Positions 9,201 to 64,000 of a DNA stretch of 64,000 nucleotides are shown here, one piece after another; positions within the stretch are counted from its first letter, which is position 1; the number at the start of each line of letters is the position of its first letter. The translations under genes and the position numbers were made by a program. The stretch comes from Macrostomum hystrix (lineage: Eukaryota; Animalia; Platyhelminthes). The notes beneath the pieces were generated by a model. The model made no database searches, was not told the DNA's origin, and saw only the letters and a program-made list of their open reading frames with translations. The DNA lies in contig CATNEN010000015.1 of assembly GCA_950097015.1 (NCBI GenBank), positions 744,001-808,000 of the forward strand, written 5' to 3'.

Positions 9201-9684
9201 TCAGTGCATCGACCAATGCTAACCCCTGATCTATCAGTGCATCGACCAATGCTAACCCATGATCCATCAGTGCATCGACCAATGCTAACCCCTGATCCAT
9301 CAGTGCATCGACCAATGCTAACCCCTGATCCATCAGTGCATCGACCACTGCTAACCCCTGATCCATCAGTGCATCGACCACTGCTTAACCCCTGATCCAT
9401 CAGTGCATCGAACACTAGCTGCTAACCCCTGATCCATCAGTGCATCGACCAATGCTAACCCCTGATCCATCAGTGCATCGACCAATGCTAACCCCTGATC
9501 CATCAGTGCATCGACCACTGCTAACCCCTGATCCATCAGTGCATCGACCACTGCTTAACCCCTGATCCATCAGTGCATCGAACACTAGCTGCTAACCCCT
9601 GATCCATCAGTGCATCGACCACTGCTTAACCCCTGATCCATCAGTGCATCGAACACTAGCTGCTAACCCCTGATCCATCAGTGC
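6219..9684. repeat. 33-bp minisatellite, ~105 units, consensus GATCCATCAGTGCATCGACCACTGCTAA(T/C)CCCT
   Basis: Directly visible tandem array. The 11-aa periodicity of the ORF-track products (HRPLLIPDPSV / VVDALMDQGLA) confirms a 33-bp period. Length variants also occur, e.g. 31 bp ..CCAATGAACCCCT and 34 bp ..GCTTAACCCCT. Confidence 0.97.
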
Positions 9685-31800: not shown

Positions 31801-34800
31801 TAAACATCTCTAAATCTTCAATAAGAAGAAACTCACGATTTTATGCAGTATAAGAGCGTAGAGTTTCATTGGAGTTGACAATGTTATTAACTACTCAATC
31901 TGCAGGCTGCGTCGACTATTCTAACAGCGGCGCTGATGGACGATGAGGAGCACGTCAGGTACGAGGCCAGCCTCATGTACGAGGCGCATCCAGCAAAGAC
32001 CAAGGATATTGTGACGATGCATCGGGAGTTCGTCGAAGGGTATGATATAATAGCTAAACCCTGCGGTTTCTTAAACAGTGGACTTTGAATGAAGAAACTA
32101 ACCACTTGCGTAACTTTCCAACCTGCGTGTACAGAGTCCAGAACGGCAGTTTGCTGATGTCTCACGCCATCTCCAAGCGAAGCGCACTAGGTGAACCTGA
32201 TAAAATGTGGAAGGGAATCAATGCCAAGCTGGCCGCTCCGGCGATCAATTGGCAAAAAATGGTCGGCAGCGCGACCATCGGCGCATCCTTTGGCATGACG
32301 GCCGTTAATGAGCTGATTGTGAAGCTGGGTAAGACTCTTTTATAGTAATTAAGGCTTACTAAAAGAAGCCTAGCAGCCCACCACACAGAATTCCGTGCAG
32401 AAATTTGTAATACATTTAAAGCTTGTGAAACTTTGTCGGCGGTTAACATAGAATATATATACCCCTAAGTATGCCTCTCAGCTAAACGTTATTTCTTAAT
32501 CGATTTGATACTTTCAATCTGCGTTTATTGAGGGTGAAGATCCGCAGAGCTATTTGGCGTTTTGCGCACCATTAATTAATCAAAAAATGATTAAACTGCA
32601 TCCCTCAGCTCTGAGTGAAGGCCAGCTCAACGTGAACGTTCATGACGAAGTGTTCGCAAAAGGACACCTGGGCGTCATCGGGCGTCATATCGACTTCTTT
32701 ATCGCCCGCGTCTGCTTCCGCGGCAAAGTGGAGTACAAGATCAGCATTCTGAAAGAATTTGGAGTAAACAGTATCAAAGACTTGGTGAAAATTTACGATC
32801 GCACAATCGGAGCATTGTACAAAGGCATCAAGGGAGCCATCAATGGGTTCCGACGGCTCTTCGCGCCCAGCAACCCGACTCAGATTTTCACCGTAGTGAA
32901 GAACCTCCGCCAAGAGTTCCAGAGGCTACCCTATGTGATTTCTGACCTGGCTAAGTCTATAGTGCAAGGGGTGGACATTCTAGCTGAGGTTGATCCACTC
33001 GAGCTGCCGTCCCATGTCCGTCCTCTGTTCACTGTACTCAAGAAGATGGCCAGCCTAGCTAACGATATCAAAGCTGATGTCACTGGCTTCTACTATGTGA
33101 GTTGACAGCTACAGTCACTAAAAGTAAAAATATTTATATCTAGATATAATTTTACGCCTTTCTTTGTACTCACAGTAAAACTAGCTCATCTTCTGTATCC
33201 AACTGAATCTGTTTGCCATCCTCAGACCATGCACGACACCATACAGAACCAAATTCCCATGTCGGCCAAACAAACCAAGGAGGGTCTGGATCTCATTGTG
33301 CGCATTTTTCCAAAGATTTTCCGCGCTCCGAAGGAGGCTATCATGAACGCATTCAAGTCGTTCTTCCAAATCGGCATGGGAGTCAGCGGGCTGCTCGATG
33401 CGAAAAACCGGACACTGGAGGCATGCTTCTTCTTAAAAGGTGAGCTGAGCTAATGCCATCGAGCTAGTTCAAAGTCTCCTCAGATATATTTATTGAGAAT
33501 CAAGGACACGGCCAAATACGCTCGAATAGATAGCTCGATATGATATACGCGTAATAAATTAAAATTAGCGTTTAACTTCCCTACCTAACTCATTCCAACA
33601 TCAGATGAGAAGCCCTACTGGTGGAACCTGACTGATCATTACCGCAGTCTGAAGGCGGAGTTCATCGAGGCCCTGCGCCACGTCAACCGCGGCCGCGAAG
33701 CTGCCCTCGCACTCGAAGGAGCGCAGATGAATGCCACCAGGCCCTTCAATGTCATGTCGGACTCGGTAAGGATATTTACCCCTTCTTTCGCTTCCCTTGC
33801 GAGGCTCATCGTTTAGTTAAGCTCGCATTTGATACTGAGTATATTGACACACGCGTAAGACCTGAGAAAGGATTGCCAAGCCTTCCACATTTTCCAGGAA
33901 ACTTGGGCCACAATCATTTTTTTAGTTTTTCTATTCTACGAAAACAGTGCGTCTGGATATTTTTCCAAGGGTAGCAAACTCTCTGTACCACTCTTAATTC
34001 AATAACATCAAACTTTGAACCTTGATATCTGCAGAAAATTTCTATAATTATAAGCTAAGGCGTCTTATCACGTCCATATCGTCAGCTTATCGCTCAAGAA
34101 TATGCTTGCAATTTTTTGCGCCAGAAAATTTTTACTGACCAATTTTTTTGCAACCAAATCTTTAATCGTACCAGTAACTTTCGCACCTAAATTTGTAACT
34201 AAACGCAAGTGACAAGAATCAGTATGCCTGGAAAATGGATAATATTTTTAAGATGTTGCATTTTAGATTTGAAAAATAAAAAAGAGGTTTCATTTCGCAA
34301 ATATTTGAGCTTTAGCTGCAGCACTTATAAAAAATCAAGATGCAACAAATGGTAGTTACGCTGAAAAGTTGACACTGTAAATTTACTGATAATTTAGTAT
34401 ACATTTTCTATACTTTTCAGGAAACTATGCAGCTTGTGGGACTCCTCAAGGATGTTCAGGACCTACTGATGGAACCGCTGAGCGGCTTCCGCACCGCATT
34501 CAACCCCCTGGAGCAGCAGATTGGGGCAATTCTCCAAATCATCCGCAGTTTCAAAGAGGCTTATCACGGGGCCAAGGAGGCCTGGAAGACAATCAGGAGC
34601 ATCGTGGACGCGATCATGGGACCGAGAGCGCACTCCGAGTTCCAACGGACGTACCGGTTAGCCGGGTCGGGCTGCAAATCGGACGGCTTCTATCCAGCGA
34701 CCGCCGACGACCTGTGGAAACATCCAGGTGTTGACCTGGCCATTAAAGCCGGCGAGAAGGTGGTTGTGCCTTTCAAAGGCGAATACTACAAGGGCCCGGA

Positions 34801-37800
34801 AGGAACCAATCAGCTCATAATTGTTCCGAAAGGCTTCAGCATGGAACGATTTCATTTCATCTTGGAAAATGTGCACTTCAAAATGGACGATGACCGCTTT
34901 CAGGCGCAGGACTTGCCCGTGTTTGACATGCAGAGCGGAAACGACCAGCCCACCGAAGGACTGGAGCTAAGCGCCGGAGCTCAACTGGGTTTTGCTGGCA
35001 CAGCCGGTAAATGTGAAAATCACATTCATCTCTCCGCAAGGGCCGGTCCAAACAGCTACCTGGACGCCAGCAAGTACTTGGAGCCGCGAGTGATGAAGAT
35101 GCCGAAGTGGGAGCAGATTTGTGACGACTACAAGGTTGTCCTACTCAATAAAGTGATTGCTGAAAAACCAACCGTTGGGGCTGATGGAAGAAAGGATGAG
35201 GACACGAGTCCAGAAAGAGAGGCCACTGAGGAATCAGTGGAGCCGTTGGAGACAGATGAGAAAAACCTTTTCACGGAGATCTACGCAGAATCAGGCCGTC
35301 TGCCGCGCAATTTTCTTCTGGGAAACGTAAGCCAAGTGTTTACTGACATCCTCGACTTCCCGAAGAAGCTTGGCGTGGATAAAATTTTCGAGCGCTTCAG
35401 CCTGCGCCGCCTGCGCCTCGCCTATGTGGTGGCGTTCCTGGAGACTGAGATGATCCGCGAGAGCTTTGTGAAGACACGCGAGAAAATGGACCAGCTGCTA
35501 CTCACGGTGAAGGACGTCTTGGAGGACCAGCCGTGCCAGAGTCCCTACCTCATGTCCGACGAGGAGCTGCGCAATGAGCTCATTAAGAAGGGCTTTGCAA
35601 AGTCTGAGGTGGAGGCCATGCCGAAAGCCAGTCTCATTGACCGGATGAAACAGAGTGACTCTCGTGAGCATCTTACAGACTTTGTTTGCTTGAATCGGGG
35701 CAGCATCTAGGAGGAGCAGGAGTGGTTGGGCATAATTAACAATAGGCCTCGAGAACAGTCTAAATAGTCGCATCTGTACGATGTCTACCTGGGAACTACC
35801 GGCAATATTTACTTCCAGGCTGTCCGCTTCTGCAGTTGTCATTACCGAGACCAATCTACTGCCAGTTCGACAAGAGCTGCCTTTCTGTGGAATGCTGCGT
35901 CGACCTCAAGGTGAAGGTGTTCCGCAAAGCTGCCAAACTGTGGGCCCGCCTGGATCCGTGCGGCAGCAGCAAGAAGCTGGAGTTCGGACTCAAGATGAAG
36001 CACGTCAAGGCAATTGTGTACACTATCGATTTCGATAAGTTTTTACCTGAAGGTGATGGCGCTTATGATCGTTACTTATATTTTTACATTTACATTTATA
36101 TGTTTTATATGTTTTTGCAATCAGCTTGGTTATTCAAGCTTGTGGCTCTGGGCTCTATGATACTCACATAAACTCAACCTTTCAGACTTTGAGGAGAAGG
36201 AGATCTGGTTGCCCGATGCTCTGCAGTTTCTAAAGCTGTTGAATATGAAACTAAAGCTGAATTACCAGTTCGTAAAGTCTCAGGAGGCCCTGATGTTTAG
36301 CCTTCGTCTGTCTGTGTGCTCATCCAGCAGCAAGTGTGAGTTCGATGTCCAGGTACTACAGGAGCTCGTGTTGCCGCTTCCCATCTGCAAAGACGGAATC
36401 ATCACCTGGCCCAAGCTGAACTGGCAGCAAGTGTTGAACAAGAACCACCTAAAGTCGGTGCTGCAAAAGACATCAACCTCGGTCATCAACGCCCTGATGC
36501 AAAAGTGGTGGGAGGATCTCCTGCAGCTGATGGGTCTTGGAGACTTTGCTGATGTCTTCAATGCCAAGACCTGCTCATTGCCAAACAAGGTTTCGAACGA
36601 GGTACTGCTAGACGGCCTGCGGGAGCGTGGAGTTCAGGTAGTGGACTCCGGCAACAAGACGCTGCTAGTTCAGTTGGCCGAGCTGCATTTTCGCCGATGT
36701 CGCAACGGGCCAGTGAAACTTGAGCTGCCGCAGCTGCCGCCGGCGCTAAGGAGTCGCGTCTTCTGCCAGGCGTCGCCGAACTGCACCAAGTTCGAGTGCT
36801 GCATGGGACTCGAGGCTTCGATCCGGGGATTCGAAATTGCCAAGTACTTGCAAGGTGCCATTCTATGGAATTTGTCGAAACTTAAATACGAGCTAGAAAA
36901 ATTATTCTTAGTTAAGACAAGAGTGTTGTCGGTAAAAACTAATATGTATTATTGAAATGCAGTTTGCAGTTTGATGCAGACAGTTGTACAGAAGGCGCGA
37001 TAAATCACTAAATATCAATGCATCACTATATCAACATATCATACTTCGTATTTAACTGTTGACTTACTTACTATAAAGCGAAACTGTTCGATAACATTTC
37101 AGGCTGGGCAAAAATGGACCCCTGTACTCTGACCTTCAGCTTCGGCTTCAACTCGCTGACTTTCAACAAGGTTCTGTTCGCCATTCCTTATGGTAGAGAA
37201 TTCGTGCAGAATGTTGGGGCTTTGAAGCTCAAGTAAGTTACTCCATTCCGTTCCACTATCATTGACGTTGGCGAAAATGATAGAGCATGATTGAAACAAT
37301 AAGATTTCAAAATTAAAACAAAAACATCAGGTATCGATTCGACCAGAACCCGGTCAACACGGAGACGCCGCTGTTCAGCCTCCAGCTGGCCATCTGCCCG
37401 GGCTCCTCGTCCTGCCTCCTGGACTACATCAGCGTGCTCAACCGGCTGCCGGTGCCCGTGCCCTTCTGTGGTAACGACTGGCAACGAGTCTTGCCTGGCA
37501 ACACCGACAAGCTGGAGGACTTCCTCAAGGAAGTCGGCGCGTCCGCCAGCCAGGCCGCGCTGGACAAGGCCGCGGAGATCCTGCTCGCAAGGACAGGTCT
37601 CACCAACGTCCTTTCTAAGGGCAGCTGCGCACGGATGAGCAACTTCACGGCCTGCCCGCACGTGCGGCTGCCGCAGCTGCCGTCCAACCTGCAGTGCCGA
37701 GTGATGGACAACTGCCTCGGCGTCGAGTGCTGCCTGGACTTTGCACTCAAGACCAGCAAAGTGGACCTCAGCTTCCTTAACTACCACGCCAAGGCCTGGA

Positions 37801-40800
37801 TTCTGCTGGACACCTGCGACTACATCAGCTCCATCGGCATCGGGAGGCTGCACTTCAACACCTCCCTGCTGGGAGCTCACTGGGGACAGAAGAAGTCGCA
37901 GTGGATCGGCAGTAAGGCAGTTCGGCTGGAGTGAGTCCCATTCTGCTTGCTGCTTTTAGGAGGAACTCTTTATTTACTCTCAAAGTTATGTTTTCTTGAC
38001 TTTAGCTACTCGGTGGACAGAGATGGCAAAGACTACTTGAGGCTGGACTTCGGCATGACAGTCTGCTTTACTGACAGCTGCGAGTTATCTGTTCAGCTGC
38101 TAAAGGACGCGCTGGTGCCCCAGCCCTTCTGCCACGGCAACTTCACCGGCGCTCTGCCCGGTGGCTCATTGGGCGACTTTGCTAAATTGCTCGGCGACAA
38201 GGCTTCTGAAGCGGCGTTGCAGACAGCCTGGGAGGCGGTGGTGCGCCGACTAGGCCTTCAGAAGGCATTCCTGAGCCCACCCCAATGCGTGTTGCCGTCA
38301 AACACTTTTAATAATGGCTGGGATAGCCGTGAGTTCAAGATTTTGGTTCTCTTGCATGCCAGCCTGAGTTCGCTGACGTAGCAAAACTATTTAGCAAGGC
38401 TCGAAGCTAACCTTGTATATGTCATTGGTCTCACAAAAAGAATCGAAAATGCGTTACTACAAGCGAAAATTTGTAACTGAACTGAATTAAATGCAAAAAG
38501 TTTTCGCCTTCAAGAAAAATTGCATTGGAAGTAGGTCTTATGCAAACCCTTGACAGATTTATCGCAAACCTTTCTGCAGGTTGCCCCAAGGTGTTCCATC
38601 TACCAAGACTGCCCAACCAGGTGCGCTGCCACCTGAATGAGTTCTGCATGGGAGTTACCTGCTGTACTGAGTTGGATTTCAAAGTGTTCAAACCCACTGC
38701 GCTGATGTCATTGGTCCTGGATCCCTGCGAGTACAAGTTCTCCATCGGCTTCAACAACATGTACTACAACCAGACTCTCTACTACTACCAGTGGGGCCAG
38801 GTCGAGACGTTCAACCTGGGGTCACCTCTGCAGATCATGTGAGCAGAACACCAGCGAGTATAATGTCTAACTGCAGCATTCTTCAATTGCTTGGCTTGAA
38901 ATAGATTTTCAATCGGAGCTAAAAAATGATGGTCTCGATTTCGCGCTTTCCAGCTACACGATCCGCAAGGACAGCGACCGGCGCCTGTTCATTGTGGACC
39001 TGAAGCTCAGCCTCACGGTGGACTCGGTTCGCACAGACTTCGTGCTGCTCGAACACTCCATGGTGCCGCAGGTGGGCTGCAACATGAACGCCTCGATCAG
39101 CTTGCCTGGTGGCGGCCAGGTCAAGGACTTCATCAGGCACCTGACTGAGACTGGCGTGCAGAAGATCACTGACGAGGCCGTCCAGGCCGTGCTCAGGCAC
39201 CTGGGCATCGGCGACCTTATCGACTTCGAGGGCCACTGCGACAACAGGACCGGCTTTTTCAACCGTAAGTCCTCATCCATATGAACTCTCAAGTAGATTT
39301 GAGTAGTTTTGTGATCTCTACATGTAAATGCACCTACAGAGAGAAGCTGAAGCTCCCCAGGTCCCCAGTCAAGCGCTGCCCGTCCGATGCCCTGAAGGAA
39401 TAGCAGAGAGGCAATTTTATGATACTCACAACTCAGAAATGTCAAAATCACGACACTCAGGCGAACTTTAGCAGGGTTTCAGCGTGGAGCAAGGGGTGTG
39501 GGCAGCCTTGATCGTGAACTCATATTTACAGCTCAAAAGGGCCGAAAGAAGGCGCACGGGTGCAGTTGAGATGTACATGCCGTGATGAGGGGGGTTTATC
39601 GATAAATTCGAATCCGGGTGGGGCTAGCCGACTGGGGCGAGGCAGAGAGCAAAAGAATGTCCGCAGAAAACGTCCATAAGAACACGGGTAAGGGCTGCAG
39701 CACAAAAAGAGATTACGAGTATGTCCACATGTTTGATGGTGTAGCCTAAGTACTTACACATATTGGCAAGTTGTTTAATTGCTTCGACTTCATTCAAAAT
39801 GTTCTGTTCCTGCCGAATCAAACACCGAATCGCTCTCCAGACTGTCCGCTGTTCAAGAGCTCGGCGAACGCCCCGGCGGGTTTCTTGCCGGGCACCTACT
39901 GTGACCTGTCAGCTGACTGTCGGATGCTGAGCTGCTGCGCCGAGCTCAACATCCTCATCGCCCGCAAGGCATTCGCGCTCGCCGTGTCCGTCGACCCCTG
40001 CGACTACAAGCTGCTGATTCGGTTCGAGAAGATGGCGCTGAGCAAGTCTCTTTTCCGCTACGACTGGGGTCGCAGGGAGTCGTTCGACCTCGGCAAGGTC
40101 ATCTTCGTGAGGTCTGACAGCACGCCATGTTGACCGATGCGAATTGCTTGTTTGATTTGAACTCAAATCTAAAAATCTTTGATTCCGCTTCCAGCTTCAA
40201 GATCGACAAAGACCCCATGAAGAAGCTGTTCTTCGTAGACCTGGATCTGCAGGTGAAGATCGAAGGAGACACCTTGACTCCGGTGGCCTTCCTCAACAAC
40301 TTCGCCATTCCGATTCCGATCTGCAACCCGAACGCGTCCATCAGTCTGCCTGGCGGCTCCATCGGCGACTTCGTGAAGGAGCTCGGCGGCAGCATCACCG
40401 AGAGCGCCATCGAGGCCGTCCTGCGGCACCTGCGGCTGGAGGGCGTCATCGCCACGCACTCGAACTGCCAGCCCGAGAGTCCCAAAGGTTCGCAGTTGTT
40501 TTCGCTGCTCATTGCCGCTCGGCTTTTTAGCAATGCGAAACGGTGATGGCAGTCTGATGAAGTGTCCCGAAATCTCACACATTCCAGTCTGCCCCGGCCT
40601 GTCGCTGCCTCAGCACATCCCGGACCCGCTGAAGTGCCACCTCAACCAGCACTGCATGGGCATCGAGTGCTGCATGAGCATGGATTTCAAGATCAAGCAG
40701 CTGTCAGTCAAGGCCTGGGCCTTCGTAGATCCGTGCGACTACAAGTTCTCAGTGGGACTGGAGAACTGGAAGTTTGAGAGGCCATTGTTCACGTTTGACT

Positions 40801-43800
40801 GGGGCCAGTGGAAGACCGAGAGGCTGGGAAACGCGCTCGTCATGCGGTAGGTCAAAGAGGGACATTTTCTGCAATAACTGTTAAGACTCTATCAATTACC
40901 TGACGGCGCATCGTTTTCTAATCGGCACAGGTACCGGATTTCCAAGGACAACAACAGGCGAGTGTTCACGTTTGACCTGACCATCTCGCTGAAGGTGGAG
41001 GACATCAGCCAGGAGTTTGTTGTGCTGCAGGGATACGAGATCCCTCAGCTAGTGTGCAATCGCGAGGCATCCATCGGAATTTCAGGTTTGATTCGAGTAC
41101 TTTTTTCAGGGATAATTAGAATTTAAGTAAACAGTAAAATTTCATTTGAACTCCACAGACCTCATTAACCTTGGAAGCGACATTGGTGAGAGTATCAAGG
41201 ACACGGCCATGGGGATCACACTGCAGCGCATCGGGCTGGACAAGAAGTTCTTCCGCCTGCAGAACTGCTCCGTAGACGGATCCACCTGGAGGAGCTCGTC
41301 GCGACAGCAGTCGAGTGAGTAGGCTAGATATTTAGTTTGCTCGCGATTCGAATATGCCTGCCCCCTTAAAGCAATGGGTCCTGGCCAAGAGTTTTGAAGG
41401 GCCTTTTCATGGGATCAGGCCTGCATGCAGTTCCAAATAACCAGATTATCATTTGTCTGAGCTCCAGAGGTGCGGTGTCTCGGAGATAGCATGTGGGATC
41501 TCCGGTCACAGGCGTCAGAAACGGTTGCATTTTGCACCTCACGAATGCCAAACCAAAAAATCCTCAGACTGTCCGCTGTTCAAACTCTCTGATCGGCTCC
41601 ATGGCGAAAAGCATCTGAAGTGCCGCATCAAGGACACCTGTCTGGAGGTGGATTGCTGCCTCAGCCTGCAGCTGGGCAACTTCCGCTACAGCTACAACGC
41701 CTGGGCCAAGTTCGACCCGTGTCAGCTGTCCGTGGGCGTGGGCATCGAGAACTGGAACTGGAGCCGGTCGCTGTTCGACAAGTGGGGCCTCATGCACACA
41801 GAGACGATCGGCAAGGCCATCGACTTCAGGTAAGGTTCGACTTCTCGGTGCCTCGGACTCTTTTGCATTAAGAAGTCCGTTGCATTTTCGAAAGTCAGAC
41901 GCAACCATTCGTTAAGCGCAGTCACAAGGTATGACACATCAACTTTCAGCTTCAAATTCGACCGCACCAATCGTAACGAGCTGGACGTGAGCTTCGGCGT
42001 GGGCACGCAGCTGGATGGCCTGTCCTTGATGCCCACCGCGTGGCTCATCGACGCCGCGCCTCTCCCGGTTCCCTATTGCCGCTCCGACAACACCCTGTCC
42101 TGGCCCAAGTGTGAGTCGCTCTGCCTTGAAGCTCTGTTCTCAGAAACTCACATCGTTACACCCTAACTTCTCTCATTTCCAACGCTTTCATCGCCTTTCA
42201 GTCGATCCTCAGGACATGGTAAAGTCAATTTACGACGCGGGCACAAAGATCATCCTGAACAGAGTTGGGGTCACGGCCGACATCCTGAGAGGCACCGCCT
42301 GCTCGCCCGTGGAAATGAACATCTGGCCGCCCAAGAACGGTGAGTTGTAGATCTTCATCCAAGGTCATACGTGTCAAGATTGTGCCGCCAATGAGCACAC
42401 AGTTTCAAAACCCCTGCCCGCACCTCTCCAGACTGCCCGCACACGATCACACTGCCGAGCCTGCCGCCCTCGATGAACTGCAGCCTCACCGCCGGCTGCA
42501 TGGGCATCGAGTGCTGCGCGCTGGCCGACTTCAAGCTGCTTCAGCGGGCCTTCCACCTCTGGCTGAAGATCGATCCGTGCAGCTACGACTTCAGTGTTGG
42601 CTTCGAGAAGGTGCACTTCAACACCTCGCTGCTTTCCTTCAAATGGGGTGTGAAGCACGTCGAGAGGATCGGCAGCGCTCTGCAGCTTGAGTGAGTAGCG
42701 CTGGGTGCGCCAAGTAGCCAATGATCAGGTGCAATTGCTTGATGCTCTGAAATTGCAGGTTCACGTTGAATAAGCTGAGCGACCTCAGCAACTTTGTACT
42801 CTCGATGAAAGTTTCCATTTGCTCCGGCTCTGACTGCGACATCAGCGTTCAGCTGTTTGAAAACTACCAGCTGCCAGTTCCATTCTGCAACACCAATGGC
42901 TCGCTGTCCTGGCCTCAAGGTGAGTTGAGGGCACAATGTGCCAATTTCGCAGTGGGGCTGTGGTCGCCGGCAGTCAACCCCCAGCATCCCCTGAATTGCA
43001 GTCGACTGGCAGGGCGGCCTGAGCGGTCTCCTGGCCACGCGCCTGTCGGTGCCGCCGAACTTCCTGCGCGCCTCCGAGTGCCCGGTGGCGGAGATGGTGC
43101 CGAGCAGCCGATGCCCGTACTTCCGCGCGCCGGAGCTGCCGGACGGGAGCATCGCCTGCAGCCAGACCGCCGAGTGCGCCGGCTTTCGCTGCTGCGCCAC
43201 CCTCGACCTCCGGATCGTGAAGCGAGCGTTTGAGTTCTGGTTCCGCGTAGATCCGTGCACCTTCACCATCGACTTCGGCTTCGAGAACTGGCACAGGAAC
43301 ACCACCTTCACGGTCTTCCCGTGGGGAACTGAGCAACTGGCGCAGCTTGAGAAGGCCATTCGGCTCAAGTAAGAGAAAGCACTACTAAACAGATGTGAAG
43401 TCAACTAAGCTTCTTAAACCTGAGCACTGTTCTCAAATACTCTGCCACTATCGCACAGGTACACCGTGTCCAAGACGCCAGATCTCATGAACTTCCTGAT
43501 CTCGGGCTCTGTTCAGTTCCGGCTTGACGACCATTGGCTGCCGGAGATGCGGCTGCTCAGTGCGGCGGAGGTGCCCATTCCAGGCTGTGCTGCCAACGGC
43601 ACTCTCTTCTGGCCTAGCAAAGGTGTGTACTTTGAATCCTGAAATCAAACATCATTGAACTGCCAGCGAATAAGTGCCATTCTTCAACCTACTCCCGTCT
43701 CAGATCTCGAAGGCAAGCAGATCAGCGGGCTGCTCGTGAACCGTCTCGGCGTCTCTCCGCAGTTCCTTCGCCAGTTCCAGTGCAACCGCAACTCCCTCGC

Positions 43801-46800
43801 GCCTATAGACAGCTGCCCATACTTTGACAAGCCGCAGCTGCCACCGCAGGCGAACTGCCAGCTGCACCACCTCTGCATGGGGCTCGTGTGCTGCCTAGAT
43901 CTGGACCTCGGATTCGTGAGCCGCTCCTTCTCGGCCTGGGCCTTCGTGGACCCTTGTCAGCACCAGGTGAGTTTCGGCTTCGAGAACTGGGCGCTCAACC
44001 GCTCAATCCTGAACTATCCCTGGGGTGAGAGCAGAGTTGAGCACATCGGCGACCACTTGCTGGTGAAGTACAAGCTGGACCACAAGCCTGATGACAGCGC
44101 GCTGTTCCTGGACGCTGCATTCGATCTGTGCCTCGACGGCAGTTGCCTGCCGAGCCCCATCGCCCTGCTGACCGATGCGAGGCTGCCCGTGCCACTCTGC
44201 TCCGGTGCGGGCAACCTCAGCTGGCCAGATTTCAACGCCAGCGACATTCGCGACCACATGATGGACAAGGCCAGAGAGATGCTCATGCAGAAGCTCGGTC
44301 TGGAGAAGGACTTCCTCAAGCGGGACGACTGCGCCCTCATGACAGGCGGCTCTGGACTGGCGAATCCTCGGTGCCCGCACTTCCGAATGACACACGACTT
44401 GCCCGACTCCGTCCAGTGCCAGCTGACTGACGACTGCTTGGAGCTGCGCTGCTGCGCAAAGCTCAAGCTGCTGACACTGGAGAAGAGCTTCAGCACCTCC
44501 CTGCGCCTGGACCCGTGCTCCATGGCGTTCAGCGTCCAGTTCGAAAACTGGGCAGTCACTCGGCCAGTCTTCTCAAACTTTGGACAGTGGCTGAAGATCC
44601 CGATTGGCAAGGCTCTGTCCATCGACCTGCAGTTCAACAGGCACCACGACAGCCAGTTGGAGCTCGCCTGGCACATTGCCAACTGCGCCGGACACGCCAC
44701 GTGCAGTGAAGAAGTTTTGCCTTTGCTGAGCGACGCCCGGCTCCCGATCCCCTTCTGCCTGTCGAACGGGAGCCTTCAATGGCCGAAGCTGAACCCAGAG
44801 GGCGCCATCGAAAACCCCGTTGACGCAGCCACTGGGGTGCTGCTGAACCGACTCGAGCTGGAGCGTCAGTTGCTCAAGCAGCCGCAGTGTCGCCCTGAGC
44901 TCTACGCCAAGAAGTGGCCGCCGCACTGCACCTTCGCCGACGTCACCCTGCGTCTGAACCGAGAGCCTTACAACTGCAAGATTCACGACCAGTGCCTGGG
45001 CATCGAGTGCTGCACGGAACTGGACTTTAAGGTGCACCGGAGGCATTTCTTCTACACCCAACTGGTGGATCCGTGCACATACTCCTTCTACCTGGGTTTC
45101 GAGAACTTTTTCTACAACCAATCGCTCTTCCACTTCGACTGGGGTCAGGAGAAGCTGCTGAGAATCGCTGGCTCAACCGTTGAGCTCAGGTGCGCGGTTA
45201 CCTGGTGATGAAATCTTTGTAGAACTTCGAGAAAGGACTTAAGGCAATGTATATGAATTAGAGCTTTATACTAAATTAATACGATTGGTTAACTGAGAAA
45301 TCTATGGAAGGCTTTTTTAACAATGCACGAAACTCTTTTATGTCTCGCTTTTCAGATACAATTTGACGCGGTCGGTGGATCTGCTGAACCTGATTGTGAC
45401 TGCCAAGCTGGCCATCTGCAAGGAGGGCTACTGCGAGTTGCCTAACACGAACTTCTTGAACCACTACCTGATGCCGATCCCTCGGTGCTACAGTAACGGC
45501 TCGTTGTCTTGGACTGTTGGTAAGAGAAAATTCATATATTATATTTTTTTACCTCGAAAATATAAACCAGCATGTTATTTGAATCATTCACAGAGCGCGA
45601 TCAAGTATCGCATAATATCAAAGGCGTTGCTGGCCTAGTGCTGACCCGGCTGAACCTGGAGCAAGGCATCCTCAGAGAGCAGGCTTGCAGCCTGAGTGAC
45701 GATGAGATTCAGCAGAGCCTGACAGCGTGTCCGCACACGATCATCCCCAGCCTGCCTGAGGGAATGCGCTGCCGGCTGACCGCTCAGTGCACCGGCATCC
45801 AATGCTGCATGGACATCAACCTGGGTGTGGCCAGGCGCGACTTCCTCTTCTGGGTCTCCGTTGACCCCTGCAAGTTTGTCTACACCTTTGGATTCGAGCG
45901 CTGGACCGTCACCCAGAGCCTCATCGGAAACGGCGGGTTGTTCGGCAGACCGGCGGAGCACCAGCTCGGACACGTGAAGATTCGCAGCATACTCGACCGC
46001 AGCGCCGACTTCAACAACTTCATCTTCACATTCGGCGTGACCATCTGTCAGGACGGCGGCTGCAGCAGCGAGCGCGTCTTCCTGGAGAACACCGCGCTGC
46101 CCATTCCGGGCTGCAGCTCCGGAGGCGGCCTCAGCTGGCCGAGCATCGGAGAGCGCAGCGTGAGCGGCCTGCTGGTGAATCGGCTGGGCATCGCGGCCAG
46201 ATACCTGAAACCGAACCAGTGCACTCTGGCGCCAGAGCAGCCAGACAAGTGTCCCCACATGCCCCCCATCCAGAGCAGCTCAGGGGGCCTGGAAAGCCTT
46301 CGCTGCGTGCACTCCGATGGCTGCATGGGTGTTCACTGCTGCGCCAGTCTGGACCTCGGCATCGTGAGCCGCTCCTTCATGGTTCGGGCCTTCGTTGACC
46401 CCTGCGTGATGGTGCTGTCCATCTCCTTCGATAACTGGCTGCTGAACCGGACACTGCTGAGCTTTGTCTGGGGCGTTGAGCAGAGGGAGCAGATCGCCAA
46501 GGCTGTGCGTCTGATCTACACTCTGGACAAGTCAGCCGACGACAAGAACTTTGTTCTGTCTGCGAGAATCGAGCTGTGCTTGGGCGACTCTGGGCAGTCC
46601 TGTACTGTGGTCAGCCTTCTCAACAACCAGTTTCTGCAGGTGCCTCTGTGCCACGCTAACGGAACCATCGACTGTAAGCAGCAGAGACTTTTCTGGTTAC
46701 ATAACTGCATTCAGGATATTACATAATGCACTTGGTTTTTTTCCAGGGGACTTCGACAAGGTCGACGGCAGCAAGATCTGGGACAACGCTGCTGAAATAG

Positions 46801-49800
46801 CTCTCAAGAGGCTAAACATACCTCCTGGAGTTTTCCGACCCGAGAACTGCACGGTAGTGACGTCATCACCAGTGTCAAGGAGGAACTGCCCCCACTTCAC
46901 AGTGCCGCCCCAGCTGCCAGAGGGTGCAAAGTGCAGAATCAGCGACGACTGTCTCGAGATGGACTGCTGTGTTGACCTGCAGCTGCTGTCCTTCAAGAAG
47001 CAGTTCCACGTCTGGCTTGCCATCGACCCGTGCAGTCTGAGGTTCGAGACGGGATTCGAAAACTGGAGGTTCAACATCAGTCTGCTCAATCACATTGGTG
47101 CGCTGTGCTTGTTTTCTCTTGTGTCAGTCCTCTTAGCAAAAAGTACAAAGTGCGAATCCCGTGCATTTCAGGTCGCAGGTACGTTGAGAAGATCGGCAAC
47201 TCGCTGTCAGTGAATTTTGAGTACGGTCGAGCATCAGACGGCCAACTGCTGGCTACACTGTCCGTAGAGTTCTGCTATGACTTCCAATGCACATTCGACA
47301 TCAAACTGCTGGACGGGGCGGTCATTCCCATACCAGCCTGCGGGGGCTCCGGACTCGTGTGGCCTGAATGTGAGTTGCCTGCGCATTGTGAATGAGAGAA
47401 ACTGAGAAGTTTAAGAGCCATTGAACTCAAATTTCAGTGGACTCGGCAGGACACGCAAAGTCGGTTGAAGAGGCCACGAAAGGCCTCATTGCGAATCGGC
47501 TGAAGGTGTCTCCGAACTTCCTGGCGGATCGGCAGTGCAGCGTGGACGAGATTCGACGCCGGAACGTCACGTGCTCGCACGCGAATGTGCCCGCTCTGCC
47601 CGACTTCACCACGTGCGGCCTGGCTCCCGGCTGTCTCGGTGTTGAATGCTGCCAGCTGGTAGACTACAAGCTGGTCAACAGAAGCTTCTCCACGTGGATT
47701 CAGTTCGATCCGTGCACCTACACCTACTCAGTAGGCTTTGAGAAGTGGTACCTCAACGGCACTTTGATGGACTTCACTGGCTGGAATGAAGAGCAGGAGC
47801 AAAAGATTGGCGACCGCCTGATCCTTCGCTTCAAGGTGGCCAGGGGACCGCACCTGCAAAGCTTCATCGTCAGCATGTCTCTGGAGTACTGCGACGGAAG
47901 CGAGTGCAGTAGAGTGGCGAACATCCTCGATGACCAGACCTTCCCAGTGCCGGTGTGCTTAGATGGCTCTCGACTCGACTGGACGAATGTCGATCGCGGA
48001 CTGAGCGGAATCCTGGCTACTCAGCTGGGCATGGACATCCGGCTGCTGAGAGAGAGGGAGTGTCAGAGGTCCGATCTTGGCCAGGCCTCGGTCCAGTGCC
48101 CGCACGTCACTGTGCCAGACACCCGGGAGGTCTACTGCTCAGCTGTGGGCATTTGCACGGGACTGGATTGCTGCTCGCTCGTCAACCTGAAAGTGGCTGA
48201 GGCGGCCTTCAAGACGTCAATCGACGTTAATCCGTGCACCTACGAGCTTGGACTCACCTTTGAGAAGTGGTCGTTCAATCGATCTCTGCTTGGATTTGTG
48301 TGGGGCAGAAAGACTGAGCACCCGATTGGCGAAAATGTAAAGCTGGCCTACACTCTGACTCTGGCGAATGAGATGAAGGACATTGTTTTCAACCTTGAGC
48401 TTTTGGTGTGCCCGCTCAAGACCGCCTGCTACAGTGTGCCGGTTTTGGCAGATCTACACCTGTCAATTACGGCCTGCTTTAACGGAACATTGATTTGGCC
48501 TGGAGGTATTTTGGACTTGATTGCTTGCCAATTCTTTGCCTTTTGAAGCACTCAGCTGCATCCCTACCGACGCATTTCAGTGCCCTCCCCGAACCAAATC
48601 GACACGGTGAGCGGCCTGATTGTTACCCGGCTGAAGCTGGAACCTGCGACTCTCAGGGACAGCCAGTGCTACAACTCCTCCCTCACGATCCCAGACAAGA
48701 CCCAGTGTCCGTTCCAAGACAAGGTGGACGTGCAGGCCGCGGATCCCAGGTCCGTGTGCGTCTTGCACTCAAGCTGCGTCGGAGTTGTCTGCTGCCAGAA
48801 CACGGATCTCATGGTGGTGTCGCGAGCATTCCATGTCAGCGTCTTCGTAGATGTCTGTCAGTTTGAGTTCTCCATCACATTCGAGAAATGGCATGTCACC
48901 GCTTCGTTCTTAACGCTCGAGTTCGGTAAGAGCTTGGCAAGATGACTGGCTAAAAAGGCCTGTATGTATTTTAGGTCACTGTTTGAGAACTTTTCCCACA
49001 TCATGCGAGTCTCTTCCACCCGCCATCCCTCTCAGACACTCGGCACGAGGTGGCAGTATCCCCGTCTCTGAAGCTGTTCTACGAGGTGAATAGCCACTTC
49101 TCAGGCAGCGGTGCCCTGATCTCAGCCGGCTACATCCTGTGTCTGGAGGAAGGCGAAGCGTGCCAAGCGCCGATAGACATCCTGCGACCCACCTTCTTCT
49201 ACCTGCCCATCTGTGACGGCGGCCGACTACTCTGGCCACCGGTGGACAAGCCCGAGGACCTGAAAAATGTTCCGAGCACTCTGATTCTGAACCGGCTCGG
49301 GCTGCAGTTCGAAAACATGTACGCGCAGCAGTGCGAAGTTGATTACATGCAAAAGTCCATCTGGGAGTCCTGGTGCAGAGAACACAACCGCAATGAAACG
49401 GACACAGATCAGCTGCGATGCACGCCAACCAAGTCCTGCACCGGCATGGAATGCTGCTACACGATCGATCTCAAAGTTACCCAGCACAGCTTCAAGCTGT
49501 GGCTGTTCGTTGAGCCTTGCACCTTACAGCTGTCAGTGGGCTTCGAGAGATGGTCCATGAACAAGACACTGCTGGGCCACAACTTTGAAACCAAACACAT
49601 TGAGCGAATTGGCAGGGCAGTTCAGTTGGAGTACCAGTTGCAGCTTGCCCCCGACTATAAAGAGTTCGTGCTGTCCATGGACCTGCTTCTCGGTGTTGGA
49701 GACAACATCATCAGGTACACCATACTTGACACCTTTTGGATGAAGATTCCGCTGTGTGCCGCCTCAAGCGACATTGGCTTCATGTGGCCTGATGAGGAAA

Positions 49801-52800
49801 TCTACGTGAGCAACGGGACCTACTCCCGAGCAAACAGCCTGCTGCTGAACCGCATGGGCCTGACTGAGGCTGAGAACGCCACGGTGCTCACCATGCTGTA
49901 CAGCTACCCCTGCGACTTCAGCCTCATCCCGCAGCACAGCTGCCCGCACCTCACGATGCCTCTAATGTCCCCGGGAGTCCAGTGCCAGTTCACAGAAGGC
50001 TGCGTTGGCGTGAGCTGCTGCATGCCTGTCAACCTGACTGTGGGAACCTGGTCATTTCGCTCCGAGCTGGCTATTGAGCCATGCTCGATGACCTTCAACT
50101 ATCAATTCGAGCGGCAAGTCATTTCCAAGGAACTGGTTGAGAGGGATCTCTGGTACGAGCAAAGGACTTTCCGATTCGGCCCGTGGATGTCAGCATCCTA
50201 CAGGATGACCCGGACTGCGGACAACAAGCACGTGGTGCTGAACCTCACAGCCACATTGTGCACGGACCAGTCCACTGTGCTGGGTGGCTGCGAGATGGAA
50301 GCCGACATTCTCAAGGACATGAGCTTCGAGTTTCCCGTGTGCCTGTCCAACGGAACCTACCTGTACCCGTCGCAGGCAGATGTGGAGAGCGGCTTGATCA
50401 TCAACCGATTGAAGGTGTCCCCGGACCTCCTGCGCTCCACAAAGTGCGCCATTGATGAGTACCCACTCAGAGAGTACTATAACGAAACTGTAATAGTTGA
50501 GGTGGAGGTTCCGTGCAACAACTCGCTGATCAACTCAACTTTGACGACCGTCAGTCCGAATGTAACTTGCTACGAGAATCAAACAAGTATTGTTGAGCGA
50601 GTAATTCTGATCCCGGCTCCTTACTGCCCGCACTTTAACGACAGCGTCCTGTGGAGAAGCCGAGGTGCCAGCTGCTCCTTTAATCTAGACTGCCTAGGGC
50701 TCAAATGCTGTATTGAGATAGACCTCGATGTAGCCATGCGAGATTTTTACTTCACCTTCGACTTGGATCCATGCAATGATACGCTACAAGTTGGATTTGA
50801 AAACTTTTTACTGAACACTTCGCTATCAACCTTTCATTTTGGCACAACATTAAATATTCATGTTACGGAAAGAATTTCTGTGGATCTGTACATGAGCGCC
50901 ATAACCGCCACGTCACCAACCATCGTGCCAGGCTTGTGGGAGCCAATCATTGGCGATCGTATCGTGGCCTATCAGGTGGATCTCAACTTTTATTTCACGC
51001 TGCCAGGGTCAGAGAACGCAAATCAGCTGGAGTATCCCATAGTGAACATGACCCTGGTTCCTGTTCCAGCCGCATGCCAGAAGGAGTTTAGGGGCAACTG
51101 GACAAGTCCTGACCTGGATGACTCAAGCATCAAGGTCGAGAGCTTGAACTATGATCAGCAATACCCGTATGTATCTGAGCTTCACAGCAGGTCTAAGAGA
51201 AGTCAACACATGGAATCGCTTCAGGCACAGAGCTTCAACACTGGTGTAAACGACCAAATGGATCCACTTACCGAAATGCTGAGGGACGTGAGCAGTCAGT
51301 CCGATCTCCTTCAGCAGTGGTCAGGACAGGACTTTGAGGCCGTAAATCAGCAGATGCAGAAAGCTTTAAAGCGCAAGGCAGAAGGCATGGGCATCAGCAT
51401 GCCTTCCCTTGAAGATGATACACGAGTTCAGCAAGACCAGAGCGGCAAAAATGATGGGTCGATTCGAAATGCCCCCATTTTGCGCATGAACCCACACCGA
51501 TTCTCTGTGCAACTCCGAAGGCTAGACTTTGAGGAGCACTTTAAGAAAGGGGTCGAGCACATCCGAGCTGTGCTTCTTAAGGCGTCTTCAAATGCTGGAA
51601 ATGCTCTGCAAGGAGGCATGTACGTACCAGGTCAAGGATTTTCAAAGCAAGGACTAGCTGATGTAGCTTACATCATTGGAAACATGTCTGTATTCGACCT
51701 CGCAGCTCTCATAAACACAAAGAATGTCGATCCTCTTGAAGTTTACTTGTTAGTGAAAGACTTCTCTCAGGTTGTCACAAATATGGTAAGGCCAGTGTTG
51801 CTTTTCGTGTGCTAATCCCCTGCTATTGTTAAATGCGACGTACTTAAGTTAAAGAAATCCACGGAAAATGCTCGCATTTTAGATCGAAGAGCTCTTTGAT
51901 AACGTAGTGTCCGGCGGATTTAACAGCGAACTGTTCAAGTCTTTTGACATCACGCTACGGGGCACCTTTACTTTATACGATATACATCTGACGTTTTTCG
52001 ATCATACCTGGCACTTCCTAGTAGGTGGTTTTGTGCCTATAGCCTTTCGGTTCAGCGCTGGCGGCTACTTTTCACTTAAAATTCAATTGGAACTGAAGAT
52101 CCTGTCTATGAAAGCGGCAGCAACTGCAATTCCAAAGATTGGAATGAAGGTACGAGTGTATGGCTTGCTTGTAAACAGGGTGGCAGATCGGGTTGACGCG
52201 TTCACCTTCATGCACCAACGAGCTCGATTCCGTGGCGAGGCCACATTTATTTGGGGCGCAGCTGAGATGAGAATGGCGATGAGAAAGTCAGGGCAGATGC
52301 ACACATCTGTGTGAATTTAAGCCTGCTTAGAGTATTTGTATGCGTGCGCTCAGAAGTCAGCAGTAACCAAATGTTGTGGCGTTGCTCGAGGCCCTCATGC
52401 TGTCGACAAAACTGAGAGTGAGACTCAATTGTCTCGCTGGCCTGCAGGTAGCCTATGGAGAGTAGCGAAGTCAAGTGAAATGTGAGAGGGCGTTGTACCC
52501 TTGGCTATATATTTTAACATAGTTAAGTTTGACAGGCTGCAGGGGGTTGACGGTACGATAACAAAAGAGTGCGCAACTGAGGGTAGGAGAGGAGTCTAGA
52601 ATGTGAGTGGCGGACCAATCAGAAAGGAGGAAAGAAGAGATAACGAGAGATTAAACTGAACGATGTAAACAAGAAAAGTGCAGAGAATGAAAGAGTGAAT
52701 AGAGGACAGAAGGTAGAGACCAAAGTCGCGACACATGCAAAATATATGACTTAACCAAACGATCTGATATCCATTACTTATTTCCCTAAATGTTCTGAAC

Positions 52801-55800
52801 TTTTCTTCAGGCGGTTGGAGGGGTCTACGTGTGCTTTTTTCTGTGCGGTGGAGCGCAGCTGACTGGGTACATCATGGACACGCGCTTTCCAACGCGGGCC
52901 GAGATCGGGTTCAGCAAGTTTCCGCTAGATGTGGGCCTCATTCTCGATGTCGAACTGGTGCCACTCAGACTGCAGCTTGATGCTATCGTGAAGCTGGATC
53001 TAGACTTTAAATTTTTCAGAATCCGGTATGCAATTATAGCGATTTCTTAACATCTGTCACATCTTAATGTAATCTAATTTATCATCACTATCTTAAAGCG
53101 ATGCGGAAAAAAATATAACAGAGGTAATTATTTTCAGAAAAACACTTTTTAAAGCCGCCATCTGGAAGTACGCCGCGCCGAAGATTTCGCAGAACGTACT
53201 GAACGTTCGCAGCGGTAAAAGGGATGACACGCCGCCTCGGATCACGGAGATGGAGTCATCGCCGGACAACGCCTTCGCAGTTGCCAAGGAAACAAGGCAC
53301 TGCCGAGTGGCGCAGCTCAGAGGCAGGGACGTCATGGATCCAGCCTTCTTGCTGGAGATTCAGGCGGAAGACGATGTCAGCCTGCTTTCTATGACCTACA
53401 GTATTGGAACAGCTAAGGGCCTTGCCGATGTGGTTAGTGGCGAGGAGTTTAAAGGACCATCTGCCATAATTTCCAGGGTAAGATCTCTTCTGACGGATAG
53501 CTTTGCTTTAAACGGATATTCACCCAAATATCGCCGCCTTCAAAATCGCTGCTGTTCACTGCAGGTACTTCCTCACAGCATTCCACTGTACTTCACGGTG
53601 AAAGTCTCTAACAACCAAGGAGATGCGGTTCACGCGACGTGCGACCTGCCAACGTACGACGTTACACTACCTAGAGGTCGGGTTCAGGAAGACTTCCAGA
53701 GCAGCAGCAATCCGAGGATTCTTTCTGCTTTCGTTGTAGCCAGTGATGATTCGCCCATCATTGAGACCAGCATTGCAGTTGGTCTTGGTGTTGACGTTGG
53801 TGGTGAAAGCCACTCGCTGTGGAAAAGGCTTGACTTAAGCAAGGATGACCATATTAATGGTAAGTAGCGATTCAGTAAATATTGTCCGAATTATCGTTTC
53901 TTTGCGAGCCAAATATGTCGCCACTAACAAAATGAAATGTTCCGAAATTTCAGATGGCTATCACCTGAACCATTTCTCCGCTCCAAAACACGGCCGCCTA
54001 GCTAGCGGAGTTTTCGTAACGAAAACAAACATCCTCGTTGCTTTCCTTTGCGCCGAAGATTGTCTAAAGCTAGGAGACAAATGCAGAGCATTTAACTATC
54101 ATTGTAAGCATTGCGATGTTTCCTTTAATTTTCCTTGAGTCCGTGTTTTGGTGTGGGTATGTGTTTCAAATAGGTAATGCTTAGCAAAAAAATTATAACA
54201 TCAATTTTAGCGGTAAGCAAGGTCTGCGAAATGACGCATGACATTCTCGGCCATCGTCTCAGCCTGTCTGACAGCAACAGCTTTGCCTACTACGAGCGAA
54301 AGTCGGTGGGCCACTCGGTCAATTTCTTCCAAGACAGTTTTAGTCTGCGGCATAATAATATTCACTTTGTGAATCTTTTCGTCAGAAATGCACTGGGCTA
54401 CACTTCCATTTTATCATCACAGCCAATATTAACAGACTTTGACCCACCACACCCCGGCTACGTTTCTAACACATCAGTTATTGAAACAGTTTACACTACT
54501 TGTCGAGAAAAAATCATAAGAAAATGGTGGGACAGGTGTGGGCCTGTGAAGCCGCAAGATGCCAACAATGTGGTTCGAACAGAGTTTGAAACTGAGCTGA
54601 GAAATCACCGCAAAATTATCGACGGCCGAGGCTCGCGAACTTTGTTCAACGGACACGACCGCATGGTCGATGTCAGGTGGACTCGCGCCAATGAGTTCAT
54701 GTCCGCCAACTGGGACGGCCTGCACGACAATGAGACTTCAATTTTCGGCATCACCTGGGCAGCGGGCACGGCCATCTGCGCAACCGACGTCAGCCTCGGC
54801 TTCGGAGATCCGCACGCCCACCTCGGCCACGAGTCCCAGTGGACTCACGTCGGCAGCATCCATCCTATTCCCAATCCGATTTACAAGGAGAGCGGCCTAC
54901 CGGATGGCAAGTACTACTCAACAGTGCGGGCTACTAACAAAGTGGAATTCGGCGGACCCATGACGCTGACTCTGTGCCACTGGAGGCCCATTGTAGTTGA
55001 CAATTCGCCACCACTGGTGCACCATCTGACGGAAATCAAGTTTGAAGACGAGACTCTAAAACTAACCGGCTTGTACAACTTTTCGTAAGCACTCGTATTA
55101 TTTTATAAACTTAAATTTTTAGTATTCTATCAGAATACAAAGACAAGTCACTCAAAGCTGTAAATAAAATATAAAGGGCTCGTACTGCGAGAGTTCAGCA
55201 TCTTAGTTCTTACAATTGATGCAAAAATTTTTCTATTATTTTACTCGTAGAGATACTACGGGGTTTTAAGTTTACTACGATGTAAAGTACGAGCTTATCG
55301 TGCAAAAATTCTAAACCTCGCTTTTAGCGATCCACAGTCCGGAATCAAGGAGTTCGACATCGGCCTGGGACGCACGAAGTTCGACACGATGGTCTTAGCC
55401 TTCCGGCGGATGCCTTTCATAGGAACGCCAGATTTTGAGGAGGACGTGCTCGAGTTTTCAAGCTCCTTTGCAATGACACACAGGCTACCTGACGGTGTTC
55501 CAGTCTGGGTTATCCTAAGGGCCGAGAACAGCGTGAACCTCAGCTCGGTGCAGCACGCGGACCGGCCGATCCTGATCGATCTGACACCGCCGATCGCAGG
55601 TTATGTCCTGGATGGAAGCGAATTCAAACACGACGCGGAGTTCGTTGGAAAGCCGGATCGCATGTGCGTTAACTGGTTCGACTTCAGAGACGATGAGTCG
55701 GGCATCGCATTCTATCACTGGCAGCTCTTCAAGGAGGCAGAGGAGATTTACCGTATCGAGTTCGTCGACAGCCACAAGCAGGTCCTTTGCATGGAGTCCA

Positions 55801-63956: not shown

Positions 63957-64000
63957 GTGCGTTGCTTTCGCAATTATAATTCCGTTTTGTGTAATGGACT

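Follow-up and report, generated by a model that had tools for sequence, protein, structure and literature searches.

What kind of domain has been multiplied in a long tandem array of cysteine-rich repeats in the flatworm Macrostomum hystrix, which gene carries it, and what might the array do? The array lies in a stretch of 64 kb on the forward strand of contig CATNEN010000015.1 (GenBank assembly GCA_950097015.1, positions 744,001 to 808,000; G000:C15:744001-808000 in our numbering), within a genome of 220 Mb. This whole stretch is called the window, and the coordinates given below are window positions unless another sequence is named. We found that the repeat unit is not in Pfam and that it is a tandem extracellular domain; it very probably represents a real, uncatalogued domain family that forms part of a giant surface protein.

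A tandem array of 21 cysteine-rich units

A hidden Markov model (HMM) of the unit was built from the intron-free copies and searched against all six reading frames of the window. The search returned 21 matches to the N-terminal half of the unit, each followed by a match to the C-terminal half, all of them on the + strand between positions 35818 and 51134. Nine units are uninterrupted and matched with E values between 2e-62 and 6.5e-47. In the other 12, one or two short introns interrupt the unit and leave 68-262 nt between the matched halves; the intron falls mostly at profile position 95/96 and, in two units, near positions 80-84. The best E value elsewhere in the window or on the other strand was 0.44, and chance is therefore excluded as an explanation for the 21-unit array. 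A regular expression for the cysteine motif gave 14 strict matches in the window, again on the + strand only. The open reading frames of the window are short and interrupted, consistent with an intron-bearing gene, and nine units lie within five uninterrupted frames, the longest of which has 921 codons. The units, as delimited by the HMM, are as follows.

35818-36439, + strand: unit 1, in exons 35818-35985 and 36248-36439
36740-37484, + strand: unit 2, in three pieces (36740-36817, 37099-37230 and 37326-37484)
37641-38147, + strand: unit 3, split at profile position 95/96
38564-39113, + strand: unit 4, split
39828-40354, + strand: unit 5, split
40569-41075, + strand: unit 6, split, with a weak match to the C-terminal half (E = 3)
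41558-42118, + strand: unit 7, split
42425-42921, + strand: unit 8, split
43094-43621, + strand: unit 9, split
43781-44305, + strand: unit 10, uninterrupted; first structure model
44357-44863, + strand: unit 11, uninterrupted
44921-45524, + strand: unit 12, split
45698-46195, + strand: unit 13, uninterrupted
46235-46720, + strand: unit 14, uninterrupted
46878-47371, + strand: unit 15, split near profile position 80, the second intron position
47536-48036, + strand: unit 16, uninterrupted; second structure model
48061-48537, + strand: unit 17, uninterrupted
48685-49307, + strand: unit 18, split near profile position 84
49347-49865, + strand: unit 19, uninterrupted
49911-50420, + strand: unit 20, uninterrupted
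50607-51134, + strand: unit 21, uninterrupted; the most divergent, with 7 cysteines

The skeleton of the unit reads C-P, then C-x5-C-x-G-x2-C-C, R/K-x-F, D-P-C, G-F-E-x-W and W-G, and continues with two cysteines, L-P-x-P-x-C and W-P; a linker helix rich in leucine completes it. Six cysteine columns are invariant in an alignment of 19 window copies. Complete units have 159-176 residues, 7-11 cysteines and 0-5 N-glycosylation sequons, and their pairwise identity ranges from 21 to 38% (median 27%); the columns conserved in at least 70% of the copies are nearly all Cys, Pro, Gly, Trp, Phe or Leu, the remainder being variable. An earlier reading made from the letters of the window alone (hereafter the sequence-only reading) had described 21 highly diverged copies of a domain of about 180 residues, held together by a Cys/Trp/Gly skeleton and spanning positions 35820-51070. 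The HMM reproduces the count exactly and the span and size closely; the divergence is borne out by the pairwise identities, and the skeleton is right in substance.

The unit has no counterpart in Pfam

Family assignment used a 2025 copy of Pfam-A and counted as membership a score for the unit that reaches, or comes close to, the gathering threshold. None of the long open reading frames, the 19 window units, the 40 multi-unit relatives and the 87 single-unit sequences gave a credible match. The best scores were at chance level and were each seen in one or two sequences (Conotoxin_I2, E = 0.038; DUF7866, E = 0.0079). A search of the PDB by sequence profile gave 0 matches at E ≤ 1, and Rfam gave no match on the window. 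Among the units and relatives scanned, the absence of any Pfam match agrees with the sequence-only reading, which could assign the repeat to no family that it could name. In the ESM Atlas, hypothetical proteins of molluscs ranked first for the units; the nearest named family, for two different units, was the arthropod DUF4773 (scores of 0.84; 0.83 and 0.81), and by the tool's own calibration such scores below 0.9 are leads only.

Predicted structure of the unit

AlphaFold2 models were computed for unit 10 with the 19 window copies (predicted local distance difference test score, pLDDT, 87.2; predicted template modelling score, pTM, 0.77) and for unit 16 with 87 sequences from several phyla (pLDDT 88.6, pTM 0.81; all five models between 87.8 and 88.6). 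The order of elements is the same in both models: after a short N-terminal segment that holds the cysteine cluster come nine antiparallel strands in succession, and a helix closes the unit at its C-terminus. These two concordant predictions support the beta-rich, Cys-stapled unit proposed by the sequence-only reading.

Foldseek searches of the PDB gave best E values of 0.056-0.066 and template modelling (TM) scores below 0.3 for both models, and the best match in BFVD had an E value of 0.014 and a TM score of 0.26. The latter result is unsupportive of a viral link, a candidate raised by a giant-virus entry in the atlas, which was rejected. In an exhaustive VIA search, the N-terminal domain of FAIM (3MX7) came first for both models, superposing over 88/90 residues at 6% identity with root-mean-square deviations of 4.1 (Z 4.4) and 3.3 (Z 6.9), and 2KW1 (listed as 'CTD'), which we take to be the FAIM C-terminal domain, scored Z 5.1 over 82/89 residues; by the calibration of the tool, whose background reaches Z 7-8, values below 8 may reflect only a common arrangement of strands. 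Like FAIM, the modelled unit has an eight-strand up-and-down antiparallel arrangement, and the whole FAIM domain is covered by the superposition. Unlike FAIM, it adds the N-terminal cysteine cluster, a ninth strand and the C-terminal helix, its Z scores stay below 8, and it has no match to the Pfam FAIM model. FAIM itself is cytosolic, is devoid of disulfides and is not repeated. We read the models as an up-and-down beta-sandwich that appears to resemble FAIM in topology and for which there is no established homologue; the likeness to FAIM is a topological resemblance, not membership.

The sequence-only reading had suggested testing for ML/NPC2-like, Ig-like or lectin folds. Like the units, these are beta-rich, disulfide-stabilised extracellular modules. 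However, none of them occurred among the best 50 matches of each of the four PDB fold searches (Foldseek and VIA, with either model), and the units have no Pfam match to them. All three candidates were therefore rejected.

The units lie within a gene for a giant protein, predicted to be membrane-anchored

The units belong to one intron-bearing gene, which starts at position 28887 and runs past the end of the window. Gene-context searches were run on single exons, and protein length and exact splice sites are to be taken as estimates. Apart from the units themselves, the window part of the gene comprises the following predicted features.

28887-29087, + strand: start codon, signal peptide and first exon of a vitellogenin-N-type lipid-transfer head
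29295-33450, + strand: the beta-barrel and helical part of the lipid-transfer head, in further exons placed by collinear tblastn matches
34427-35707, + strand: M23-peptidase-like domain and SAP-like segment, placed by a weak Pfam match, motifs and collinearity
35552-35647, + strand: the SAP-like segment, at the end of the M23 exon and directly before unit 1
51189-51200, + strand: R-S-K-R, a dibasic motif of the proprotein-convertase type, 18 codons past unit 21
51883-63976, + strand: conserved C-terminal ectodomain exons, the gene continuing beyond the end of the window

At position 28887 a methionine is followed by a hydrophobic leader and then by the motif F-K-x-G-x-x-Y-x-Y. This first exon aligns with residues 3-58 of the bivalve protein P0003 and 15-60 of P0154, and the later head exons are collinear in tblastn with residues ~43-893 of P0157, P0153 and P0154. 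Overall, orthologue residues ~3 to ~890 from bivalve and amphioxus proteins map collinearly onto positions 28905-33438. Pfam recognises Vitellogenin_N in these orthologues (P0153, E = 1.3e-11, residues 106-580; P0003, E = 1.7e-8), and HEAT_2 as well in the bivalve and amphioxus proteins collinear with the head exons. Exon-by-exon Pfam searches gave no match on the window's own head exons, nor on its C-terminal ectodomain exons; the identity of the head and of the C-terminal modules is for that reason drawn from collinearity with the orthologues. Through these orthologues, the gene has Vitellogenin_N behind a signal peptide, as do large lipid transfer proteins.

Both zinc-binding motifs of the M23-like domain are present (HxxxD at 34721-34735 and HxH at 35021-35029). 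Peptidase_M23 scored 15.1 bits on the window exon (E = 0.026) against a Pfam cut-off of 28.7. At the same place in the orthologues, M23 scored up to 26.5 bits, with the bivalve scores just under the cut-off, and SAP reached 40.7 bits. In P0157, P0160 and P0003 the M23 and SAP regions are collinear with this exon.

On the other side of the array, equivalents of the R-S-K-R motif stand just after the last unit in bivalve P0151 (R-R-R-R) and amphioxus P0002 (K-R), so that all three animals have a dibasic motif at this place. Exon 51883-52152, the first one past the array, encodes a Gly-rich hydrophobic segment that has no Pfam match and is 33-41% identical over ~85-110 residues in bivalve, amphioxus and Ptychodera. 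Between 54177 and 63976 there follows a string of ~120-residue modules, each of which opens with D-x-T-P-P and contains W-x-G-F-x-D-x-E-S-x-I. The C-terminal exons are collinear with Sinanodonta P0151 (residues 3514-6285), amphioxus P0002 (2939-5182) and Ptychodera P0101 (409-2063), and in the collinear region of P0101 Pfam detects fn3 and PAN_1. EGF-like modules and one transmembrane helix follow in locus L015, at the window equivalent of 65158-65823. The helix, at ~65.75-65.82 kb, has a 19-residue mean hydropathy of 2.86 and is succeeded by a basic stop-transfer sequence, R-S-R-A-R. A signal peptide at one end and a single C-terminal hydrophobic helix with basic residues at the other are the features of a type I membrane protein.

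Collinearity with the orthologues suggests that head, units and transmembrane tail are encoded in one transcript. Because a signal peptide lies upstream of the units, and EGF-like modules and a transmembrane helix lie downstream, the units are placed outside the cell, where they would occupy the central third of a single giant type I membrane protein, estimated at about 9,000 residues. As predicted from sequence, the order is signal peptide, lipid-transfer head, M23-like domain, SAP-like segment, 21 units, dibasic motif, fn3-like string, EGF-like modules and transmembrane helix. This gene context, with its head, M23 domain and membrane anchor, is absent from the sequence-only reading of the units.

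Relatives in molluscs, amphioxus and a hemichordate

A profile search of the full library retrieved 771 proteins at E ≤ 1e-3, 247 at E ≤ 1e-10 and 32 at E ≤ 1e-30, many of the relatives carrying 5-15 copies of the unit. Those that bear a name, all uncharacterised, come from the bivalves Potamilus, Sinanodonta, Mytilus spp., Mya, Pinctada and Saccostrea, from the gastropod Babylonia, from three amphioxus sources, from the hemichordate Ptychodera and from Macrostomum lignano, whose UniProt entry A0A1I8J2Q2 is among the strongest relatives; no vertebrate or ecdysozoan was present among the named matches looked up. The claim of an old, selected skeleton made by the sequence-only reading gains support from this occurrence of the same domain in molluscs, cephalochordates and a hemichordate. 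Word-index protein searches were blank or near-blank because of their length window and the high divergence of the units, and a bivalve query retrieved bivalves only, which made the profile search of the full library necessary. Full-text literature searches on the architecture and on the orthologue accessions returned nothing relevant.

Along its whole length the gene matches, in collinear order, proteins of bivalves, amphioxus and a hemichordate that bear Pfam Vitellogenin_N, M23, SAP and fn3, and the bivalve orthologues contain from 21 units (P0154, truncated) to about 25 (P0155). Unit 1 finds its best match in unit 1 of P0157, P0153 and P0154, and it is the only unit with clear positional orthology across phyla. 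Of the 21 flatworm units, 20 have another flatworm unit as their closest counterpart, at only 32-48% identity. A cross-phylum positional orthology of all units was thus rejected. The domain and its architecture are old; because only unit 1 pairs across phyla, the 21-unit array as such may be ancestral, or it may have been expanded or homogenised within lineages.

A paralogue with mosaic identity

Within the M. hystrix genome the domain occurs at two loci only, the window gene and, some 350 kb from it, an inverted paralogue.

G000:C15:405281-434156, - strand: inverted paralogue of the whole gene, in loci L012-L014, corresponding to window positions 34536-62466

DNA identity between the two copies is 99.3% over window positions 38577-43433, introns included, and ~94-96% over 43434-51707. 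The M23 exons share 67-74% identity in DNA and 56% in protein, and the C-terminal parts are 79-86% identical. This mosaic of identities suggests that gene conversion has acted on the repeat array and not beyond it; less probably, it is an artefact of the assembly.

A stalk and its alternatives

What, then, might the array do? Each unit, of about 165-180 residues, consists of a small cysteine cluster, a predicted eight- to nine-strand up-and-down beta core and a short leucine-rich helix linking it to the next unit. In the mechanical role that we consider the most likely, the core would be pinned by further cysteines (those of D-P-C, the two mid-domain ones and that of L-P-x-P-x-C), with up to five disulfides formed per unit. 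The array would then be a chain of disulfide-locked beads, a long, stiff and protease-resistant stalk of 80-100 nm by rough estimate, which would present the lipid-transfer/M23 head far from the cell surface. Cleavage by a convertase at the dibasic site past unit 21 would shed head and stalk together. A structural module is favoured over 21 copies of one binding site because the conserved positions appear to be those that determine the fold, whereas the others vary. We give the stalk role of the array close to an even chance; the explanation as a whole, a non-Pfam extracellular domain in a giant protein with a mechanical stalk role, is one that we favour on balance.

Several points weigh against this explanation. 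The stiffness of the stalk, which depends on the geometry between units, is conjecture. That two phyla have retained some 21 diverged units is just as compatible with a separate ligand for every unit. As to the novelty of the family, a very distant link to DUF4773 is possible, given atlas scores of 0.83-0.84 obtained twice, and absence from Pfam is compatible with an entry in InterPro, CATH or the AlphaFold-DB clusters.

Of the alternatives, the one that survives best, and which we nevertheless consider unlikely, holds that the units are ligand-binding modules for lipids, glycans or microbial surface patterns, present in 21 copies for avidity and feeding or targeting the head, an idea that goes back to the sequence-only reading. 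Vitellogenins bind microbial patterns, and in the head a predicted lipid-transfer module stands beside an M23 domain of the peptidoglycan-hydrolase type, with HxxxD and HxH both retained; moreover, the number of units is about 21 in both flatworm and bivalve. Up-and-down beta folds of the lipocalin and fatty-acid-binding protein types do occur among the weak structural matches (Z 4.7-5.2), but these matches span ~55-65 residues, and a Z near 5 denotes a common arrangement according to the tool. The conserved columns consist of Cys, Pro, Gly and aromatic residues, no conserved polar or charged surface patch is conspicuous, and the ML/NPC2, lectin and Ig folds were not recovered.

A second alternative concerns classification: the unit could be a very divergent, enlarged member of DUF4773 (PF15998), and so not a new family. 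DUF4773 is nearest to the units by language-model features, as the nearest named family of the ESM Atlas for two units (0.81-0.84); its atlas clusters have 171-184 of 256 features in common with the units, and inspection of the sequences reveals in both a C...C-x-CC cluster ahead of the beta strands. However, DUF4773, a family of small Cys-containing proteins, has 118 positions against about 170 for the unit and occurs as single copies, not in arrays. At E ≤ 10 its Pfam model leaves all 42 units of the two paralogues unmatched, as it does the 40 + 87 sequences of window units and relatives, and hhalign of the unit profile against a flatworm DUF4773 protein gave a probability of 0.2%. With neither HMM nor hhalign support, the unit was not filed under DUF4773, and we retain this membership as an improbable alternative. 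Elsewhere in the genome, DUF4773 has a single match above the cut-off, at G000:C14:1744895-1745251 on the + strand (locus L011:496-852, 52.5 bits), in a gene separate from the array; the family is otherwise known mainly from arthropods.

There is also a slim chance that the units are adhesion modules, functioning like cadherin repeats in homophilic or matrix contacts, for example in a ciliated epithelium. The predicted type I topology, the membrane-proximal EGF-like modules and the long modular ectodomain would suit such a function, and the named carriers are all soft-bodied aquatic invertebrates. Yet no calcium-binding or other interface motif is conserved, and the dibasic site past the array may detach the array from its membrane anchor. 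Finally, the view that the array is no functional domain but a pseudogene in decay, a repeat at DNA level or an artefact of annotation can be dismissed almost entirely, since copies of only 21-38% identity have kept every key cysteine, the open frames that hold nine of the units reach 921 codons, four phyla share the architecture, and the old paralogue is open too.

Comparison with known proteins

Considered as a stalk of tandem units, the array has parallels in cadherins, in fn3 or Ig strings and in SEA/EGF membrane mucins, where diverged beta-rich copies likewise stand between a head and a single transmembrane helix. In both cases the modules are extracellular, glycosylation of the units being predicted from their sequons. 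In contrast to the modules of these giants, the unit has no match to them in sequence or fold, is about twice the size of an Ig or fn3 domain, and carries as many as five putative disulfides. The module is new; its principle of design is a familiar one.

The head invites comparison with vitellogenin, apoB and apolipophorin II/I, because Vitellogenin_N is present in the orthologues and the window is collinear with those orthologues. Convertases cleave apolipophorin and vitellogenin, and the dibasic site is reminiscent of that. The resemblance has its limits, however: Pfam detects none of the lipid-cavity parts DUF1943, DUF1944 and vWD, and we know of no described lipid transfer protein that has an M23 domain, a SAP segment, a 21-unit array, an fn3-like string or a transmembrane anchor.

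Most large conserved ectodomain modules of animals were catalogued long ago. A module of ~170 residues, found in hundreds of copies and in at least four phyla, with confident structure predictions yet outside Pfam and with no convincing analogue among solved structures, clearly qualifies as a candidate for a new domain entry, and possibly for a new fold. The host protein is itself unusual: it would be a relative of vitellogenin and apoB that is anchored in the membrane and has an M23 domain in which the metal-binding motifs persist. A definition of the module would let giant proteins now listed as 'uncharacterised' be annotated, and the M. lignano homologue A0A1I8J2Q2 offers a tractable entry point for function; RNA interference and in situ methods exist for that species. 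More tentatively, and at somewhat less than an even chance, the unit may define a new extracellular fold and family that is the hallmark of an ancient bilaterian giant, a membrane-anchored relative of lipid transfer proteins bearing a possibly active M23 domain on a stalk of 21 beads. Lipid capture, or attack on bacterial walls, at a mucociliary surface is a speculative function for such a protein.

Other features in and around the window

Upstream of the gene, a separate open frame at 1029-4013 on the + strand (995 codons) gave only a weak Pfam hint of a zinc ribbon of the FORGETTER1 type. It is followed by a 33-bp minisatellite at 6219-9684, with ~105 copies, 92% matches and a strong GC skew, which reads as repeats of the P-D-P-S-V-H-R-P-L-L type in several frames. 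Downstream of the gene, long simple satellite arrays occupy loci L015 and L016 at the window equivalent of 73.6-84 kb and read as W-E-M-R-R or A-M-G-D-E repeats in different frames.

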